A stretch of DNA of 63,552 nucleotides, counting the filler, from Ministeria vibrans ATCC 50519 (taxonomy: Eukaryota > Protista > Filasterea), in the NCBI GenBank assembly GCA_943704425.1. It is 5 parts of 5 records of this genome, joined end to end, with 100 filler letters (N's around TTAATTAATTAA, not from the genome) between each part and the next. Parts side by side here need not be neighbours in the genome. Positions count along the whole stretch, not along the records: positions 1 to 7,252 come from CALSCP010000073.1; 4 more parts are not named here. One strand, 5' to 3'. A program made the translations under genes and the position numbers. The notes beneath the pieces were generated by a model. The model saw nothing but the letters and a program-made list of their open reading frames with translations, had not been told where the DNA came from and ran no database searches. Positions 1 to 9,516 of the stretch are shown in pieces. Within the stretch, counting starts at the first letter, position 1; each line of letters starts with the position of its first letter.

Positions 1-210
1 TCTCACTATTCACAAATCTTACCCGCTAAGACAATGCAAAGAAGAACACAAGAGTCCAAAACACAGTCCAAATCAGTCACTCACGATTTCTCACTATTCA
101 CAAATCTTACTCCCTAAGACAATGCAAAGAAGAACACAAGAGTCCAAAACACAGTCCAAATCAGTCACTCACTCATTCGAACTATTCACAAAACGTACCC
201 CCTAAGACCA
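1..210 (-). repeat. ~88-bp tandem intron repeat with a variable 3-nt core (micro-exon array B)
   Basis: Unit on the + strand is CTATTCACAAATCTTAC-nnn-CTAAGACAATGCAAAGAAGAACACAAGAGTCCAAAACACAGTCCAAATCAGTCAC. It shares motifs with the 80-bp repeat at 4650-7252. Confidence 0.85.
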
Positions 211-883
211 TGGCCCAGAGCAGCGAATCAATACAAACGCGTGTCAGGTATACACTCACACAGCCGATATATCAAAATAGAAAATCTTACAGTCTACAAA
301 GTGGTCAGGCCATCAGAGAATTTCAAACGAGCATATGTTCTCTTACAAACTGCAAAACACAGAGCGCCACCCATTCAGGAGCAAGAAAAACAAGTTAGAA
401 CCGATCAGTATCCTTTGTCAAGCAAATCACGAACCTTCTACAGACAAGTTTATTGTTTTAGTCATTGTCGACCAAACCGACTTTTCGTCTTACTTGCACA
501 GAGATTGTCGAGAGACGGCGAGAATCCCTCATTCCCCCTGTACGTAATCTCCTCCAGGTGCCCACGCAAATCTAAAATAGCTGTTGGGAGCGTCTTGAGC
601 TTGCAATTCCCAACGTCCAGAAGCTTCGTCCAGAAAAAGAAAAAAAAAACGAGCCAACTCGTGAGAAATCCTGGCCTTTCTCTCCCCCTTCCCATACCTT
701 GAGCTTCTTGAACTGTCCAATCCAGCCGGGAATGACCCTAAGCGGGTTGTCTGTCAGCAGCAATTCCTGTAGAGTGTCAGCAAGAACAAGAATTTCGTCT
801 GGGAGAGAAGTGAGCCCCATCTTCCTCAGGTTCAAGGAATGGGACGTCTGCGCGGCTTGAATGCATTCCTGTAGTGAAGACAT
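1..883 (-). CDS. 5' part of an LRR-containing gene (gene B, probable Roco-caspase paralog) running into a 3-nt micro-exon array; truncated by the window start
   Basis: ATG at 883. Exon 883-698 (MSSLQECIQAAQTSHSLNLRKMGLTSLPDEILVLADTLQELLLTDNPLRVIPGWIGQFKKLK) and exon 623-494 (LLDVGNCKLKTLPTAILDLRGHLEEITYRGNEGFSPSLDNLCA+A) carry LxxLxLxxNxLxxLP LRR motifs. The second exon ends in phase 1 at GTAAG. AG/3-nt/GT micro-exons follow at 437-435 AAG, 349-347 TTT, 293-291 ACT, 201-199 GGG, 113-111 GGA and 25-23 CGG. Confidence 0.8.
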
Positions 884-1292
884 GCTTTGGCGACAAAGAA
901 ACAGATAAAGATTGGTGTTAATCTGACTGTTTTCTTTTGAAAAGGGTCGTTTTTGTTCGATCAACCTGGCTGAACCTCCTCCTAGCCAAGAAAATTCGGG
1001 AGAACGTCTGGGCTCAACATCAACACCGCAGAGTGTGCGTTGGTGGCCGCAACCCCCTGAGACCACTGAAGGGCTAAAGGAGTCACTACAAGAGTTGCGA
1101 CGGTCATCGCAGAAAGTAAACGGAAAAAAAATTGTTCCTGGGATAAATCAAAAATAATTATTAATGTGCAGGTATCAATATGAATGTACTATAAAAATAG
1201 GGTCGAGCTCTTCTCTCTTCTCCTCACACTGTTACTCACCCACTCTCTTCCTCTATGCCTCTCTCCATGTTTCATCTCTCGGTCTCTCTCTG

Positions 1293-4200
1293 TCACTTCC
1301 CGTCCCGAAACAACAGAATGTCTCCGTCGTTGCGAGTACCCAGCCACTCGTCCCAAATGCGCCCCACCACCATCGCCTGGTACGTGTGCGCCGTGTCCAT
1401 CTCCCGCAGTCTCTGTCGCAGTCCCACCGCAGTGATGTGCTCTTCTCCCGTGCGAAACGCACTCAGTGTCGTCGGTCCCAGTGCGCGCAGAAGCAGCTCA
1501 GTCAGACGAGTGTACTTGGACGTCTTCACCACAGTCCCATCTGCTTTGGTCCAATTCACTTGCTCCTGCGACATGAAACTGCTCGTGTCCGCCAGTGAGC
1601 TCGCCAGCAGCTGACGCGAGTACCCGTGTTGCGCATCTGTGCTCGAGAACGATAGGTCGTCCTCTGCCTTGAGCAGTGCACCAGACCAGCAGAAGTCGCA
1701 CACGACCAGAATGTTGCAGCCGGGCCATTGCACAGTCGCCGTCAAAAGGCCTTTCAGTGCGTCGAGATTGAATCGCGAAAACGGACTGAAGGTGTTGGGG
1801 GCGAACACAGTCCGCTCTGCATCACTGAGCAACAGACCGCCCTGACTGTCCTCCGCCCCATGGCCCAGCAAGTGCACAATCAGCAGTGCGTCTCGTCCCA
1901 CTCCGTCTCCCACATCTCCTATCAAACGACGTGCCGCTGCCGCAATCTCCACCGCAGTCACCCGGTCTCCAGCCTGAGTGTCCGTCACACTCTGCACTTT
2001 AAACCCGCGTCCCTTCCACAGACTCTCCAGTGCACTCACACTCCGACGCACTCCAGGTAAGTCAGCAAACGCCGCCAAGTGAGGGTTACTTGTCGATTCG
2101 TACCGACTCACACCCACAATCAGTGACGCTGCATGGACATACCGCCGCGACATAGGGCCACCTTAAATGAGAGGGAATAGATACTTGAGTCAATGAAAAA
2201 GGATATTTCTGATCTTACAGAGTCGCTTGGTCCACCACTCTTCCACTTTCACATTGCACACGCGCGGTTCTTCACTGTGCAGCACCGCAGCCAACGTCCC
2301 TTCTTCACGGTACATCTCCGGCGACGCAGCCACGTCCAAAGGACGGAACAGAGGCAGTGACGGTTTGGACGGATGGGCAGGCACAAGCACAGCCACACCA
2401 CGCCATCCCCACCGAAGACTCTGCGTCCGCTCACACACTCGCGTGCTCACCCGTTGCAACGTCGCCATCACTCGTTCAGCTGGTCCCCCGTCGTCGCACA
2501 CCTCCACACGAATGCATTCCTCACCCACATTCAGACGCAGTCGCACAGGAGCACACCCGTCCATCACAAGTAAGTCTGTGCATCGTTGAGTCGCTCGGAT
2601 CTCGCACACTTTCATCGTCTCCCACCACAGTGCCACCACAACCAGATGGAAAGTCGCCAATGACACGGGAAGCACAGATCGCGTGTCCTCCTCGTCTTTC
2701 ACCACCTGGTACAGCATCACCTGCACAGGAGCGGGTGTCGCTCGCTCAACAAATGGCGCATGTTCAGGCAGCAACATCGGCACGAGCAGACGACTGCCGT
2801 GTCGGAACACAAGACTCAGTCGCTTAAGTGCCGAAAACAGTGCGGGGCCATCGCGCACGTCTGCACCGGCAAGAACTGGCTCGCCCTTTGCTTCACGCGC
2901 TGCTGCAGTCCACACAAGCCACAATGCAACCTCAACAGGGAATCCCTCCTCAGACCGCTCTCGTGACTCGTCCAGCTCGCGAAACAGCTTCAGTGTCTTC
3001 TTGTTGTCCAGTCGCCGTCCTGCCGCCTTCACCAGGTCAAGCATGTCGAGCGCGCGTTCGCTTGTCGCTCGCTCCCACTGTGCCATCACTACCGAGCACA
3101 GCAACTCGACAGCTGCAATCAGTCGTGGCACATCAAACACAATCGTGTCTACCGCGGCGACACCTCGTGCACTCGAGTCCTCGCGGCACACCAGCACATC
3201 CGCTGCTTCCTCCAAGTACGGCACCAGTCCCGTGCGCAGTGCTTGCTCGTCGGGAACCAGCGACCCGACAGTGATGACGGGCGTGGTCTCGCTCAGTACG
3301 ACACTCGGCAGATCACCAACAGACGACAGCAACTCAATGCGGCCCATCCGCGACCACCGACCAACCAGATCCTGCGCACACACATATTCCAGTGGCAGAG
3401 TGCGGCGACGCACCGCAGCATGCATCCCCTCGCTCAGTTCGCGCAGCCCAATGCCCTTGACACTGCCCACTTGGAAGAACGGAGTGCGACCAGACCCAGG
3501 CAGAATCAAGTGGTTGCCCAACACGGGTCCCACAAGACGATCAATCCCTTTCGCGACAGTACGCAGCAGTGATTGTGGTGCGGTGTCATCGGGAAACGTG
3601 TCGACATGAGTGCCCACAATGAGCACACGGAAGTACGACGAGAGCGTCTCGGGCACTTGGTGTGCAATCACATGAGCCCACTTGGACAGGTGCTCGTACT
3701 GTCGCTGTGCCGCTGTGCGATCGTCCATGACAGACAGGTCGAAGACGAGGATGTACGCGGACTCGGACCCCATGAAGAGCGCGGGGAGAGAGTCAAACAT
3801 GGGCTCACCTGAGTGAGTGTAAAATTGAGAAGAGGAAGTACAAAAGGTAAACTCTCACCTGCAAAGTCGAAGGTGTCCAGGTCAACGTGTTGCTCGCTCA
3901 GCTCGCCAATAAGAAGATCTTGAACAGCGCTCATAGTCAGCGCGACGGGAGCGGGAGAGGTGGGGAGCGTGGGTGCATTGGGGACGAATGTCGAAGAGGA
4001 CGCGGCTGTTGTTGGGACTGGTGGGACTGGTGGGGGAGTCACGACAGTAGGGCTCATCAGTGACTCCTCTTCGCCTCCGTCATCGCGTGGGTCTGTGGCA
4101 GTCGCATCTCTTGGAGTGCCGATCATGCTGGCCAGGCGATACTCCTCGAGCGGCACAGCCTCAAAGAAGCCTCCTTCACAGTTGAGGACGAGTCGCACGC

Positions 4201-7200
4201 GCTTCATCCGTGTCGCCACTGAGCGGTCTTTCTCCTCGGGCAATGGTTCTCCCTGTAGAGCTGCAAGCAGTGCTGTCTTGCCTGCCATCACTGCACCCAG
4301 AAATAGCACTTTGAGTGAGTGCGACTCGACTGAGCCGCGGGAGAGGGCCGCCTTGAACGCTGACTGAAAGATTGCATCACTGACAAACAAGGGTAAAGAT
4401 TTGAGTGGAGAGTTGGGTTCCACTTTGCAGATATCTCTTACGGATCTAAAAAAAAATATGTCAGATCAAAAGGTTGACAGCAATGTTAACACCTTTTGTC
4501 ACTGTGTAGAGCGCCTGCAACAGTTCCTGCGTGTGTCGCTTCCAGACCGCACGGTCTGCAATCCCCATGGAAATAAGCGATACAACCTACTCGTCCCACT
4601 TACCAACTAGAACAAAAGTGTCACTAACTCGTTGTCACTATTCACAAATCTTACCAACTAAAACAATGCAAAGAAGAGTTCAAATCACAGTCCAAATCAG
4701 TCACCATCCATTTCCATCTATTCTTCAAACTTACCCCCTAAAACAATGCAAAGAAGAGTCCAAATCACAGTCCAAATCAGTCACCATCCAATTCGATCTA
4801 TTCTTCAAACTTACACGCTAAAACAATGCAAAGAAGAGTCCAAATCACAGTCCAAATCAGTCACCATCCAATTCCATCTATTCTTCAAACTTACTCTCTA
4901 AAACAATGCAAAGAAGAGTCCAAATCACAGTCCAAATCAGTCACCATCCATTTCCATCTATTCTTCAAACTTACCCGCTAAAATAATGCAAAGAAGAGTC
5001 CAAATCACAGTCCAAATCAGTCACCATCCATTTCCATCTATTCTTCAAACTTACTCGCTAAAACAATGCAAAGAAGAGTCCAAATCACAGTCCAAATCAG
5101 TCACCATCCATTTCCATCTATTCTTCAAACTTACCCCCTAAAACAATGCAAAGAAGAGTCCAAATCACAGTCCAAATCAGTCACCATCCATTTCCATCTA
5201 TTCTGCAAACTTACCCGCTAAAATAATGCAAAGAAGAGTCCAAATCACAGTCCAAATCAGTCACCATCCATTTCCATCTATTCTTCAAACTTACGAACTA
5301 AAACAATGCAAAGAAGAGTCCAAATCACAGTCCAAATCAGTCACCATCCATTTCCATCTATTCTTCAAACTTACTCCCTAAAACAATGCAAATCACAGTC
5401 CAAATCAGTCACCATCCATTTCCATCTATTCTTCAAACTTACAGTCTAATAAAACAATGCAAAGAAGAGTCCAAATCACAGTCCAAATCACAGTCCAAAT
5501 CAGTCACCATCCATTTCGATCTATTCTTCAAACTTACACCCTAAAACAATGCAAAGAACAGTCCAAATCACAGTCCAAATCAGTCACCATCCATTTCGAT
5601 CGATTCTTCAAACTTACCCCCTAAAACAATGCAAAGAACAGTGCAAATCACAGTCCAAATCAGTCACCATCCATTTCGATCTATTCTTCAAACTTACACG
5701 CTAAAACAATGCAAAGAAGAGTCCAAATCACAGTCCAAATCAGTCACCATCCATTTCGATCTATTCTTCAAACTTACTCCCTAAAACAATGCAAAGAACA
5801 GTCCAAATCACAGTCCAAATCAGTCACCATCCATTTCGATCTATTCTTCAAACTTACTCCCTAAAACAATGCAAAGAACAGTCCAAATCACAGTCCAAAT
5901 CAGTCACCATCCATTTCGATCTATTCTTCAAACTTACCAGCTAAATCAATGCAAAGAAGAGTCCAAATCACAGTCCAAATCAGTCACCATCCATTTCGAT
6001 CGATTCTTCAAACTTACCAACTAAAATAATGCAAAGAACAGTCCAAATCACAGTCCGAATCAGTCACCATCCATATCCATCTATTCTTCAAACTTACAGT
6101 CTAAAACAATGCAAAGAACAGTCCAAATCACAGTCCAAATCAGTCACCATCCATTTCGATCTATTCTTCAAACTTACCAACTAAAACAATGCAAAGAACA
6201 GTCCAAATCACAGTCCAAATCAGTCACCATCCATTTCGATCTATTCTTCAAACTTACTCCCTAAAACAATGCAAAGAAGAGTCCAAATCACAGTCCAAAT
6301 CAGTCACCATCCATTTCGATCTATTCTTCAAACTTACGAACTAAAACAATGCAAAGAAGAGTGCAAATCACAGTCCAAATCAGTCACCATCCATTTCGAT
6401 CTATTCTTCAAACTTACACCCTAAAACAATGCAAAGAACAGTGCAAATCACAGTCCAAATCAGTCACCATCCATTTCCATCTATTCTTCAAACTTACTCC
6501 CTAAAACAATGCAAAGAAGAGTCCAAATCACAGTCCAAATCAGTCACCATCCATTTCGATCTCTATTCTTCAAACTTACTCCCTAAAACAATGCAAAGAA
6601 CAGTCCAAATCACAGTCCAAATCAGTCACCATCCATTTCCATCTATTCTTCAAACTTACGCCCTAAACCAATGCAAAGAAGAGTCCAAATCACAGTCCAA
6701 ATCAGTCACCATCCATTTCGATCTATTCTTCAAACTTACGAACTAAAACAATGCAAAGAAGAGTGCAAATCACAGTCCAAATCAGTCACCATCCATTTCG
6801 ATCTATTCTTCAAACTTACACCCTAAAACAATGCAAAGAACAGTGCAAATCACAGTCCAAATCAGTCACCATCCATTTCCATCTATTCTTCAAACCTACT
6901 CCCTAAAACAATGCAAATCACAGTCCAAATCAGTCACCATCCATTTCCATCTATTCTTCAAACTTACAGTCTAATAAAACAATGCAAAGAAGAGTCCAAA
7001 TCACAGTCCAAATCAGTCACCATCCATTTCCATCTATTCTTCAAACTTACGGTCTAATAAAACAATGCAAAGAAGAGTCCAAATCACAGTCCAAATCAGT
7101 CACCATCCATTTCCATCTATTCTTCAAACTTACCCGCTAAAATAATGCAAAGAAGAGTCCAAATCACAGTCCAAATCAGTCACCATCCATTTCCATCTAT

Positions 7201-7252
7201 TCTTCAAACTTACCCGCTAAAACAATGCAAAGAAGAGTCCAAATCACAGTCC
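1293..7252 (-). CDS. Roco-type GTPase fused to a C-terminal caspase/metacaspase-like (peptidase C14-like) domain, preceded by a micro-exon array (gene A); 5' end lost in the gap
   Basis: Predicted exons are 34 x 3-nt micro-exons (7216..4604), 4555-4493, a 4-nt exon 4445-4442, 4379-3859, 3808-2219 and 2161-1293. All introns are GT-AG and all frames join. ROC motifs are the P-loop KVLFLGAVMAGKT, G3 DTFDFAG|EPMFDSL, AYILVFDLS and G4 LIVGTHVD, followed by a COR-like region. The C-terminus has ASLIVGVSRY, LIVHLLGHG and LVVCDFCWSG (His-Gly / Asp-x-Cys dyad). Confidence 0.85.
4604..7252 (-). repeat. 80-bp tandem repeat = 77-nt spliceosomal intron + variable 3-nt micro-exon (array A; 34 micro-exons)
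   Basis: Minus-strand unit is GTAAGTTTGAAGAATAGATGGAAATGGATGGTGACTGATTTGGACTGTGATTTGGACTCTTCTTTGCATTGTTTTAG-NNN. It has a canonical donor, a CTGAT branch-like motif, a pyrimidine tract and a TAG acceptor. Only the 3 nt between AG and GT are hypervariable, with 13 distinct triplets. Confidence 0.9.
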
Positions 7253-7352
7253 NNNNNNNNNNNNNNNNNNNNNNNNNNNNNNNNNNNNNNNNNNNNTTAA
7301 TTAATTAANNNNNNNNNNNNNNNNNNNNNNNNNNNNNNNNNNNNNNNNNNNN
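7253..7352. other. Artificial scaffold linker (N44-TTAATTAATTAA-N44)
   Basis: An all-frame stop palindrome between N runs. The same linker recurs at 34923, 56124 and 58301. Confidence 0.95.
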
Positions 7353-7353
7353 G

Positions 7354-7440
7354 CACGCCAAGCGCAAGACTGTCACCTCCATGGACGTCGTCTACGCGCT
7401 CAAGCGTCAGGGCCGCACCCTCTACGGTTTCGGCGGATAA
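7354..7440 (+). CDS. H4: Histone H4, C-terminal fragment (5' part in gap)
   Basis: Translates to HAKRKTVTSMDVVYALKRQGRTLYGFGG*, the near-invariant H4 C-terminus. Confidence 0.97.
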   Translation, partial: HAKRKTVTSMDVVYALKRQGRTLYGFGG

Positions 7441-8111
7441 ATTTCTTTTTATCCGGCCCCGCTGCCCCGTACAACAGCGTCTTCTCGGCGTGCATCCGCG
7501 AGAGACAAACAAACCAAAACCAAAACCAAAAAACTGGTGTTTTTCAACACCACCACATTGTCAAAGAAGGAGAACGAAACGAACTGCGTAATTGATTCTG
7601 TGTGTGTCAGCTGTTGGGAGGGAAATGGGCGTGTACTTTTGGAGTTCATGTCGTGTTGGTAGTGAGTGTCTCTTCTTTCTTCAACCATATATTGCATGGG
7701 TACATGAGCACACATCTCGAAATGACCAGTGTGCCTACCAGTCCACTCCTGAGCGTTCTGTGAGTGTCAGCACGCGTGAGCAGTTTGTGAGGCGGGAGAG
7801 CGTTAGTTGATGAGAGGCAGCGACTTGGTGAGTGGCTCTTGTACTTGCGCGTGTTGGGTGAGCACAGTGACAGCACAGACACATTCTGGCGAAATGATTC
7901 CAGTCTTGGCGTTCTGCCTTCTGTGCGCGTATCAGCACGCGTGTGCAGTTGGGTTTAGAGTGGCAACCGTCGGCTGACGACTGGGCGAGTTTGCGTTTGT
8001 CTTTATATTTTTGTACATTGAAAAAGAATGCGAATAATTCTACTAATTATAAAAGCGTAATCAGTGAGTAATCTCAATCTGTTCAGTTTCAAATTTTCTA
8101 CTCACCTCAAC

Positions 8112-8234: not shown

Positions 8235-9516
8235 TTGAAACTCGTTTTGTAAGGTCGCGTCACGTTGTCCTTCGGGGCACCCTCAGACGCTCAAGGTCTA
8301 CCCGCTCGTCTCAGGCAAACCCTTTCCTACCCTCTACTGGCTCGTGTGTCCAGACCTGATCAGACAAATCGGCACAATGGAGGTGAGACACTTCTCTCTA
8401 TCACTTTGTTCTCTCTCTATCACTCGTTGTCTCTCTATCACTTTGTTCTCTCTCTATTTGTCTCTCTTTATCTGTGTTCTCTCTCTCTATCACTTTGTCT
8501 CTCTCTCTATCACTATTTGTCTCTCTATCACTTTGTCTCTCTCTATCACTTTGTTCTCTCTCTATCACTTTTGTCTCTCTATCACTTTGTTCTCTCTCTC
8601 TATCACTTTGTTCTCTCTCTTTATCACTTTGTTCTCTCTCTATCACTTTTGTCTCTCTATCACTTTGTTCTCTCTCTCTATCACTTTGTTCTCTCTCTTT
8701 ATCACTTTGTTCTCTCTCTATCACTTTGTTCTCTCTCTATCACTTTTGTCTCTCTATCACTTTGTTCTCTCTCTATCACTTTTGTTTCTCTCTCCCTCTC
8801 TCTCCCTTCCATCTCTCTATCTCCCCCTCCCATCTCCCTCTCTCTCTCCCTCCCATCTATCATCTCTCATCTGTCTCCCGCTCTCTTCTCCTCTTTGCAG
8901 AGCCAAGGCCCCCTCGACCGCGTCAGAGCCGCCATGGATGCCGACGACAAGATGATGCAGCGCAACCTCGAAGACCACAAACAATACGCAAGGGTATAAT
9001 ACTTATTATTACAATTATCATGATAGGGTCGTGTCATCATTCGTTTCGTCATCCTTCTTGCATGCAGGACCGATGGGACTACCTCAACGACGAGGACAAG
9101 GCATACTGCGAGCGGGCAGGCTACAAAAGCTCACTTCAGGACCGTGGCATCGGCGGCACACAGTTCCCCGAGACCACTCGTTGCCTCGTACCCCACTCAA
9201 ATCAAATCAATTTCAATAATGTCTCCTATTTCTTCCTTCTTGCCTCTCCCAGCATTGTATGTACGCAGCTCACTTTGGATCAGCACACCGACTTGTCGTG
9301 TGCGACTGGGTTGACGACGACGCAGGCAAGCCCCTTCAGTGTGAAATGACAGAGGGACGCATCGAACGACTGCGCGACATTGCTCGCGCAGCCGACGACG
9401 AAGAAGCTTCACTCGACCAAGTCACAGTCGAGTCAGAGCCACACCCACCAACCTCCACAACTACGACTGCAGCGGCGACTGACACGGAGACAAAGAATGC
9501 AGACGACAAAGAATGA
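8112..9516 (+). CDS. DUF501 family protein (5 exons)
   Basis: Exons 8112-8180, 8254-8382, 8901-8993, 9068-9187 and 9253-9516 join in frame. Motifs SRCPSGHP, GKPFPTLYWLVCP and GIGG...RCLHCMYAAH are typical of DUF501. Confidence 0.8.
8391..8790 (+). repeat. Intronic CT-rich minisatellite (CTCTCTCTATCACTTTGTT-like unit)
   Basis: Degenerate ~16-22-bp units inside DUF501 intron 2 (8383-8900). Confidence 0.85.

Follow-up and report, generated by a model that had tools for sequence, protein, structure and literature searches.

Can a protein-coding gene contain dozens of consecutive exons that are each exactly three nucleotides (nt) long? This question is raised by a locus of the filasterean Ministeria vibrans ATCC 50519 (assembly GCA_943704425.1, 29.7 Mb in 2,860 contigs, which are written here as C plus a number). 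The window, meaning the whole 63,552-nt stretch of DNA that was analysed, begins with the source piece C73:1-7252 (window 1-7,252), which carries two genes, A and B, both on the minus strand. Each contains an array of units, defined as a pyrimidine tract ending in ag, a triplet NNN, and a gt donor. We document here the anatomy of gene B and of its family, the frame logic of the arrays, and the signatures of selection that they bear. Judging from these sequence features, the triplets are probably spliced and translated as one-codon exons. If this is confirmed by RNA, the arrays are an undescribed extreme variant of micro-exon gene architecture.

Anatomy of gene B and its array

Gene B lies on the same strand as gene A and starts about 410 bp past the stop codon of the latter (spacer at 884..1292), in agreement with the initial annotation, which had described it as a second, adjacent gene. 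Its first exon (698..883, minus strand; ATG at 883-881) comprises 62 codons, encodes putative leucine-rich repeats (LRRs) 1 and 2, and ends in phase 0 at AAG/gtatgg. By inspection, the N-terminus is a polar LRR cap that begins with MSSLQECIQAAQ. Protein searches were run exon by exon and the joined reading frames were evaluated computationally; exon 1 matched Pfam LRR_8 with E=0.004, which is under the curated cut-off, and the LxxLxLxxNxL pattern is visible across exons 1 and 2. Intron 1 (624..697; 74 nt, gtatgg...gaag) is 54-99% identical to its counterparts in the paralogues. Exon 2 (494..623) contains 43 codons plus one base (A), encodes LRRs 3 and 4, reads ...SPSLDNLCA followed by the single A, and ends in phase 1 before gtaaga. 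Phase 1 means that the upstream exon ends one base into a codon, so that each following codon consists of the last base of one triplet and the first two bases of the next.

Exon 2 is followed by six triplets on the same strand. The first, AAG (435..437; GAG in C1260), is flanked by unique introns, and its donor, gttcgt, is non-consensus, yet it is kept as gtt[ct]g in all paralogues. The second, TTT (347..349), is replaced by TCT in some paralogues, which is a synonymous change in phase 1 (GTT/GTC), while the third, ACT (291..293), corresponds to ATT, TTT, or TCT elsewhere and gives Tyr or Phe in phase 1. At the fourth, GGG (199..201), the preceding T together with GG forms an invariant Trp codon, and this is the first unit with an 88-bp repeat intron after it. 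GGA (111..113) and CGG (23..25) both lie within the 88-bp repeat, with the contig end 22 nt beyond the latter; the number of units in gene B is at least six. In phase 1, the six triplets read K-V-Y-W-G-T, and the two LRR exons, the six triplets, and the peptide ...NLCAKVYWGT that had been proposed for this gene were all borne out by the minus-strand sequence.

The first four introns of the array are unique sequence. They are followed by the 88-bp repeat (1..212, minus strand; 2.4 copies with 91% matches according to Tandem Repeats Finder), which is composed of 85-nt introns and 3-nt exons and is cut by the contig end. Alignment showed that the 88-bp unit corresponds to the 80-bp unit of gene A, apart from an insertion of 8 nt and divergence in its 5′ third; the two are 81% identical. 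Repeat finding and alignment therefore agree with the earlier description of unique first introns followed by a repeat of about 88 bp that is related to the 80-bp unit.

Sequence tests of the triplets

In the six arrays that were compared, the triplet columns had a mean entropy of 1.38-1.69 bits, versus 0.017-0.091 bits for the other 77-86 columns. Similarly, the pairwise per-site difference was 57-76% (near random) in the triplets, which is 15- to 75-fold higher than the 0.9-3.7% measured in the introns beside them. Uniform mutation of a duplicated unit is unable to yield variability that is confined to the triplets. In an unlikely alternative, the repeated part of the array would be intronic minisatellite DNA that splicing invariably discards, whether all at once as a single long intron or through the skipping of all units, in which case only the conventional flanks, and perhaps the conserved end units, would be present in the mRNA. 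It accords with the direct in-frame joining of exon 2 to the post-array exon, both being in phase 1, and with array lengths that vary widely (6 to 42 or more units) and cause no evident damage, but it offers no reason why variability should occupy exactly three columns.

The spacing of the splice sites raises the same difficulty. Of the 185 array units, 184 have a spacer of exactly 3 nt, while the introns tolerate indels and vary in length from 65 to 92 nt, which a discarded minisatellite would not account for. It also leaves unexplained the complete splice signals in nearly every unit, and it implies a 3-kb intron, which is unusual where the other introns are 47-99 nt long. Two further origins of the triplets were rejected: target-site duplication by a transposon would give identical neighbouring triplets and dispersed copies, and junction diversity from end joining would give spacers of variable length.

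The reading frame is set by the flanking exons. Every paralogue has an exon 2 that ends in phase 1, with the synonymous last codons GCA, GCT, and GCC, and the post-array exon shows third-position variation in phase 1 only (within RAQWK, CGT/CGC/CGA and CAA/CAG). In this phase, no stop codon was found in the 186 units of seven arrays, whereas shuffling of the unit order gave a mean of 4.24 stops (P=0.005); phase 2 contained 18 stops, which is the chance level. Avoidance of stops in the phase dictated by the flanks is again unexplained if the array is simply removed. Trp codons formed as T/GG over a junction numbered 17, compared with 11.4 in shuffles (P=0.02).

The first units are conserved as a peptide across their exon borders. 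Throughout the paralogues, units 1-4 encode [KR]-V-[YF]-W, and the changes that span the borders are synonymous (GTT TAC / GTT TAT; GTC TTC / GTT TTT / GTC TTT). The unique introns between these units have indels of 1, 2, 9, and 34 nt among the paralogues, and no variation is seen in the splice sites, the micro-exons, or the CTRAY-type branch motifs. Even the divergent member on C1237 retains the phase-1 exon end and the triplets AAG, TCT, TTT, and GGT (K-V-F-W), despite a barely alignable intron. The view of the initial annotation that the constant exon size reflects function rather than a satellite accident is supported by five independent sequence tests.

Beyond the first units, the phase-1 peptides of the arrays are complex and differ wholly from one paralogue to the next. 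Trp, Tyr, Phe, Gly, Arg, and Asp are abundant in them, and most of the peptides end in V-V-D ahead of RAQWK. The array introns behave in the opposite way: only 2-3 of 77 consensus positions differ between C43, C915, and C2647, whose synonymous sites are about 20% different and whose first introns differ by 16-20%. Since the consensus is nearly identical at diverged loci, the repeat introns must be either constrained along their full length or homogenised between loci. Full-length constraint is plausible because a 3-nt exon holds no splicing signal.

Conserved introns next to variable exons are also the pattern of snoRNA host genes (PMC11608373), and the units do hold CTGA and TGAT motifs. The introns could accordingly be the product, with each repeat freeing a small RNA in the manner of SNORD115/116 and the tiny exons serving as unconstrained spacers. 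We consider this very improbable. No Rfam match was obtained at E up to 0.1, the folding of the unit did not depart from that of shuffled sequences (z of -0.4 to +0.6), and the splice sites and branch point leave too little of a 77-nt intron to accommodate a small RNA. In addition, the arrays lie within protein-coding genes, between in-frame exons, and neither the fixed 3-nt length nor the phase-1 signals would be explained.

Several observations weigh against translation of the triplets as one-codon exons. Phase 0 is likewise free of stops, and when only unique adjacencies are counted, the P value for stop avoidance rises to about 0.02-0.05; the test is weakened because block duplications within the arrays make the units non-independent. 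Skipping of a whole array would also be in frame, and frame logic alone is therefore insufficient to demonstrate that units are included. No genomic or transcript-derived protein of this organism was present in the protein collections. The array on C312 contains GAT GAT, which creates a T/GA stop in phase 1, and has no upstream LRR exon; the copy may have been truncated or be in decay, or it may start from a different first exon. One unit on C2854 (~4800 of extract L036) has a 5-nt spacer, CATGG, the sole spacer other than 3 nt that was found, on a short contig that ends in the array. Both of these arrays look defective. The number and order of units may be partly mis-assembled, as arrays often meet gaps or contig ends, and array-bearing relatives were not found outside this genome in the SCHR19-1 contigs or in scans of JGI metagenomes. 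Finally, no mechanism accounts for introns that are homogeneous while triplets 80 nt apart stay different. Separately, the C312 array (~4147-5237, minus-strand reading of extract L019) was seen to contain one GC donor.

The gene family and its effector bodies

The unit pattern matched 177 times in the genome, compared with 0 for a reversed control; 100 of the 177 matches were listed by location. LRR exon 2 occurs in 13 copies genome-wide, and arrays are present on C43, C73 (two), C173, C312, C915, C1049, C1260, C1600, C2414, C2596, C2647, C2854, and C1237. They range in size from 6 to 42 or more units and fall into four intron repeat families of 80, 88, 89, and about 86 nt. With 13 copies of exon 2 and arrays on at least ten contigs, the suggestion that genes A and B belong to a gene family with a common mechanism holds well beyond this locus. 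None of the 13 copies of exon 2 is part of a processed (intronless) copy of the junction between LRR and linker, and a generic three-unit pattern with 35-65-nt gaps matched just simple repeats and the start of the C43 array.

Whole genes are contiguous on C1260 and C1049, where the LRR exons are followed by an array (25 and 13 units, respectively), the post-array exon, a P-loop/ROC region, a long middle region, and a caspase-like domain. This order of LRR, array, ROC, COR, and caspase supports the earlier proposal that gene B displays the 5′ architecture that is missing from gene A. On C915, the head composed of LRRs and array leads instead into a coiled coil plus a protein kinase (Pkinase, E=6e-20; 5282-7810 of extract L018). 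C43 (extract L016, after 8445) shares the coiled-coil exon with its QQRLE repeats with C915, and C2596 carries a kinase-like exon (8700-8900 of extract L021). As one head is fused to either kinase or ROC-COR-caspase bodies, it behaves as a swappable module.

The most divergent member, C1237:1-1641, has a CT-rich intron of about 390 nt after exon 2 and its own 83-nt repeat intron family, which is 66-67% identical to the 80- and 88-nt units, a value that does not exceed the best of 200 shuffles. Its array still consists of 3-nt exons, which read K-V-F-W-Y-H-L.

Gene B itself can be followed beyond the contig end. C173:66221-66328 corresponds to window 108..1 with 100% identity over 108 nt and is located directly after an 8-N gap. 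Beyond this overlap, C173 (66220-69615, plus strand) contains the last intron of an array, a post-array exon beginning with RAIWKRDTNELLQA, a 4-nt exon, and a ROC-COR-caspase body that is 61-72% identical to that of gene A. Based on these matches, the C173 stretch is probably the downstream half of gene B; because the overlap sits within the repeat, the join of C73 and C173 is probable rather than proven. With this likely join, gene B would extend leftward into a ROC-COR-caspase body, as had been anticipated, and not into an unrelated protein.

Gene A complements this picture from the 3′ side. Its 80-bp repeat array (4638..7252, minus strand; 32.7 copies in Tandem Repeats Finder) contains 32 micro-exons of 3 nt between ...ttttag and gtaagt... 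and is cut by the contig end, which gives 34 units in the window when two terminal TTG micro-exons are included. The latter (4604..4657; exons at 4657-4655 and 4606-4604, minus strand) are accompanied by 48-nt introns, and TTG TTG closes most arrays. The initial annotation had noted that the 3-nt size persists here beside an unrelated intron sequence; the exon size was indeed retained in both TTG units, whereas the intron is not wholly unrelated, as the first ~20 nt of the intron at 4654-4607 equal the 5′ end of the 88-type unit. Each 80-nt unit of the gene A array was also observed to contain an internal 12-nt direct repeat (AGTCCAAATCAC twice, plus strand), and 68-nt and 83-nt versions of the unit are found in C73 as well as in C915 (e.g., window 5377-5445 and 6902-6970). 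The array on C2647 is the one closest to that of gene A.

The remaining exons of gene A are all on the minus strand. The post-array exon (4493..4555; 63 nt) is in phase 1 at both ends and reads RAVWKRHTQELLQALYTVTK. It is followed by a 4-nt micro-exon, ATCC (4442..4445), which is required for the frame into the ROC exon; C173 has ATTC as a 4-nt exon in the corresponding position (~5499-5502 of extract L020), while the paralogue on C1260 codes the matching Asp-Pro within an ordinary exon. The N-terminal part of the putative ROC GTPase (3859..4379) contains the P-loop GAVMAGKT and ends with DFAG, and in the C1049 paralogue, the Pfam Roc match has E=0.0015 and scores 19.2 bits, where the cut-off is 27. 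The rest of the putative ROC and the COR-like region (2219..3808) are supported by a tblastn match to the C1049 paralogue. For the 554-aa middle region of gene A, all ten best family-bearing Atlas matches were COR-A/Roc, with a top score of 0.96, although no Pfam match to COR was obtained in this region. The last exon (1293..2161; stop TGA at 1295-1293) is caspase-like: Peptidase_C14 scored 25.1 bits, above the Pfam cut-off of 21.4, and the dyad motifs GHG and DFCWSG are present in both gene A and C1049. The last domain of both is, from its sequence, assigned to the caspase/metacaspase fold with a predicted His/Cys catalytic dyad. The complete model (4555-4493, 4445-4442, 4379-3859, 3808-2219, 2161-1293) is frame-consistent with GT-AG introns throughout, but only if the micro-exons are used.

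Arrays frequently abut N gaps, contig ends, or points where unrelated sequence is attached (both ends of C73, as well as C2121, C2362, C173, C1600, C2414, and C2647). As the assembler breaks or collapses at the array repeats, all unit counts are lower bounds. The fact that many arrays lie next to gaps or contig ends, or are fused to unrelated sequence (C2647, C1600, C2414), together with the defects on C312 and C2854, could suggest that the arrays are assembly artefacts or decaying pseudogenes without a biological role. We give this little credence, since the architecture recurs on more than ten contigs with four intron repeat families, the family bodies have long open exons, and the ratio of nonsynonymous to synonymous differences per site (pN/pS) of the LRR exons against their paralogues is 0.20-0.43, which indicates purifying selection and hence live genes.

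Relatives of the bodies are rare elsewhere. Among 1.84 billion representative proteins, the 554-aa middle region of gene A had 4 matches and the 764-aa body exon of C1049 had 7; these relatives all come from ENA metagenome assemblies labelled SCHR19-1. The four SCHR19-1 contigs that bear body relatives contain no micro-exon arrays. The ROC-COR-like body has its nearest relatives beyond this genome on two SCHR19-1 scaffolds (L024 and L025; 53-63% identity), and these relatives have WD40-repeat N-termini and ordinary introns. An alignment scan of JGI metagenomes with exon 2 did not turn up any LRR relatives, and the unit pattern gave just 5 single matches there, which is the chance level.

Proposed mechanism and comparison with known systems

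According to the mechanism that we propose, gene B would represent the 5′ portion of a gene that belongs to a lineage-specific family, with about 13 receptor-like members. Every member is predicted to encode 3-4 N-terminal LRRs, a hypervariable linker of ~7-45 residues rich in Trp and other aromatic residues, and an effector body, which would be either a ROC GTPase with a COR-like region and a caspase-like protease, or a coiled coil with a protein kinase. The linker would be coded by a run of exons (6 to 42 or more), all of exactly three bases and separated by short introns that are unique at both ends of the array and near-identical 77-86-nt copies in its middle. With phase 1 at the end of the upstream exon, each codon is split by an exon junction; consequently, each unit contributes one residue, and gain, loss, or skipping of units preserves the frame. 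A 3-nt exon is too small for splicing signals, so that all signals must reside in the introns, where a gtaagt 5′ site, a CTGAT branch-point-like motif, a pyrimidine tract, and a 3′ ag are the candidates. The usual pattern of conservation would thereby be reversed, with almost invariant introns and exons saturated with differences.

The units would be spliced successively, by intron definition or by co-transcriptional recursive removal, and then translated. The repeat structure may let the linker diversify fast by unequal exchange of one-codon cassettes, and the linker may tune recognition or activation in the LRR-ROCO and LRR-kinase proteins. A bolder and rather doubtful extension is that the arrays are a splicing-based diversity generator, which would yield from each gene a multitude of isoforms with different linkers between sensor and effector, in addition to rapid germline reshuffling of one-codon cassettes. 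With interchangeable splice sites and one-codon exons, any donor could join any later acceptor in frame. If it were true, the arrays would be a microbial counterpart of receptor diversification of the Dscam or VLR type.

Should the triplets be translated, this would be the most extreme split-gene architecture found, with dozens of one-codon exons and each codon derived from two exons. It would bear on the minimal exon size and on the number of such exons that the spliceosome handles in a row, as well as on whether introns alone can carry all splicing information. Tandem repeats of exon plus intron would represent a possible frame-safe source of hypervariable segments for receptor-like proteins in a unicellular eukaryote. 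There would also be consequences for annotation, as gene finders and RNA-seq aligners would miss or break every gene of the family and assemblers break at the arrays.

In the literature searched, neither an array of consecutive 3-nt exons nor a repeat-intron unit was found. The nearest parallel is offered by the micro-exon genes (MEGs) of schistosomes, whose exons measure 3-81 bp (PMC10526429). Like these, the family has a series of tiny symmetric exons, each a multiple of 3 in length, flanked by conventional exons and codes for variable proteins, with a run of 6 to 42 or more 3-nt units between LRR exon 2 and the post-array exon. Unlike in MEGs, the array exons are all exactly 3 nt and split a codon at every junction, and the introns are short (77-86 nt), tandem, and near-identical rather than long and unique. 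The products also differ, being LRR-ROCO or LRR-kinase proteins of ~1,000 residues with no obvious signal peptide on inspection, whereas MEG products are small and secreted. No sequence relationship between the two was seen.

Isolated 3-nt micro-exons are known from human MAP4K5, Drosophila homothorax, and RPS24 (PMC8632122, PMC7392893, PMC12207440). They show that the spliceosome is able to include a 3-nt exon, but they are single and occur in otherwise ordinary genes. Introner-like elements provide many near-identical spliceosomal introns per genome (PMC3609843). They are dispersed by insertion in unrelated genes, while the introns studied here lie in tandem, exactly 3 nt apart, within a single gene family. 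No such dispersal was found, as the 100 unit-pattern matches listed and all DNA matches of a 353-nt array stretch are on family contigs.

Recursive splice sites are zero-length exons (ag/gt), through which a long stretch can be removed stepwise. Sequential removal of this kind is, in our analysis, the most plausible way in which the arrays would be processed, with the difference that the arrays hold three bases between ag and gt, which would stay in the mRNA. At the protein level, the family resembles ROCO proteins of the LRRK type in its predicted order of LRR, ROC, COR, and output domain and in its P-loop and DFAG motifs. It departs from them in Pfam scores, as Roc and LRR are under the curated cut-offs and COR is without a match, and it is set apart by a caspase-like output domain and by a linker between LRR and ROC that is coded by micro-exon arrays.

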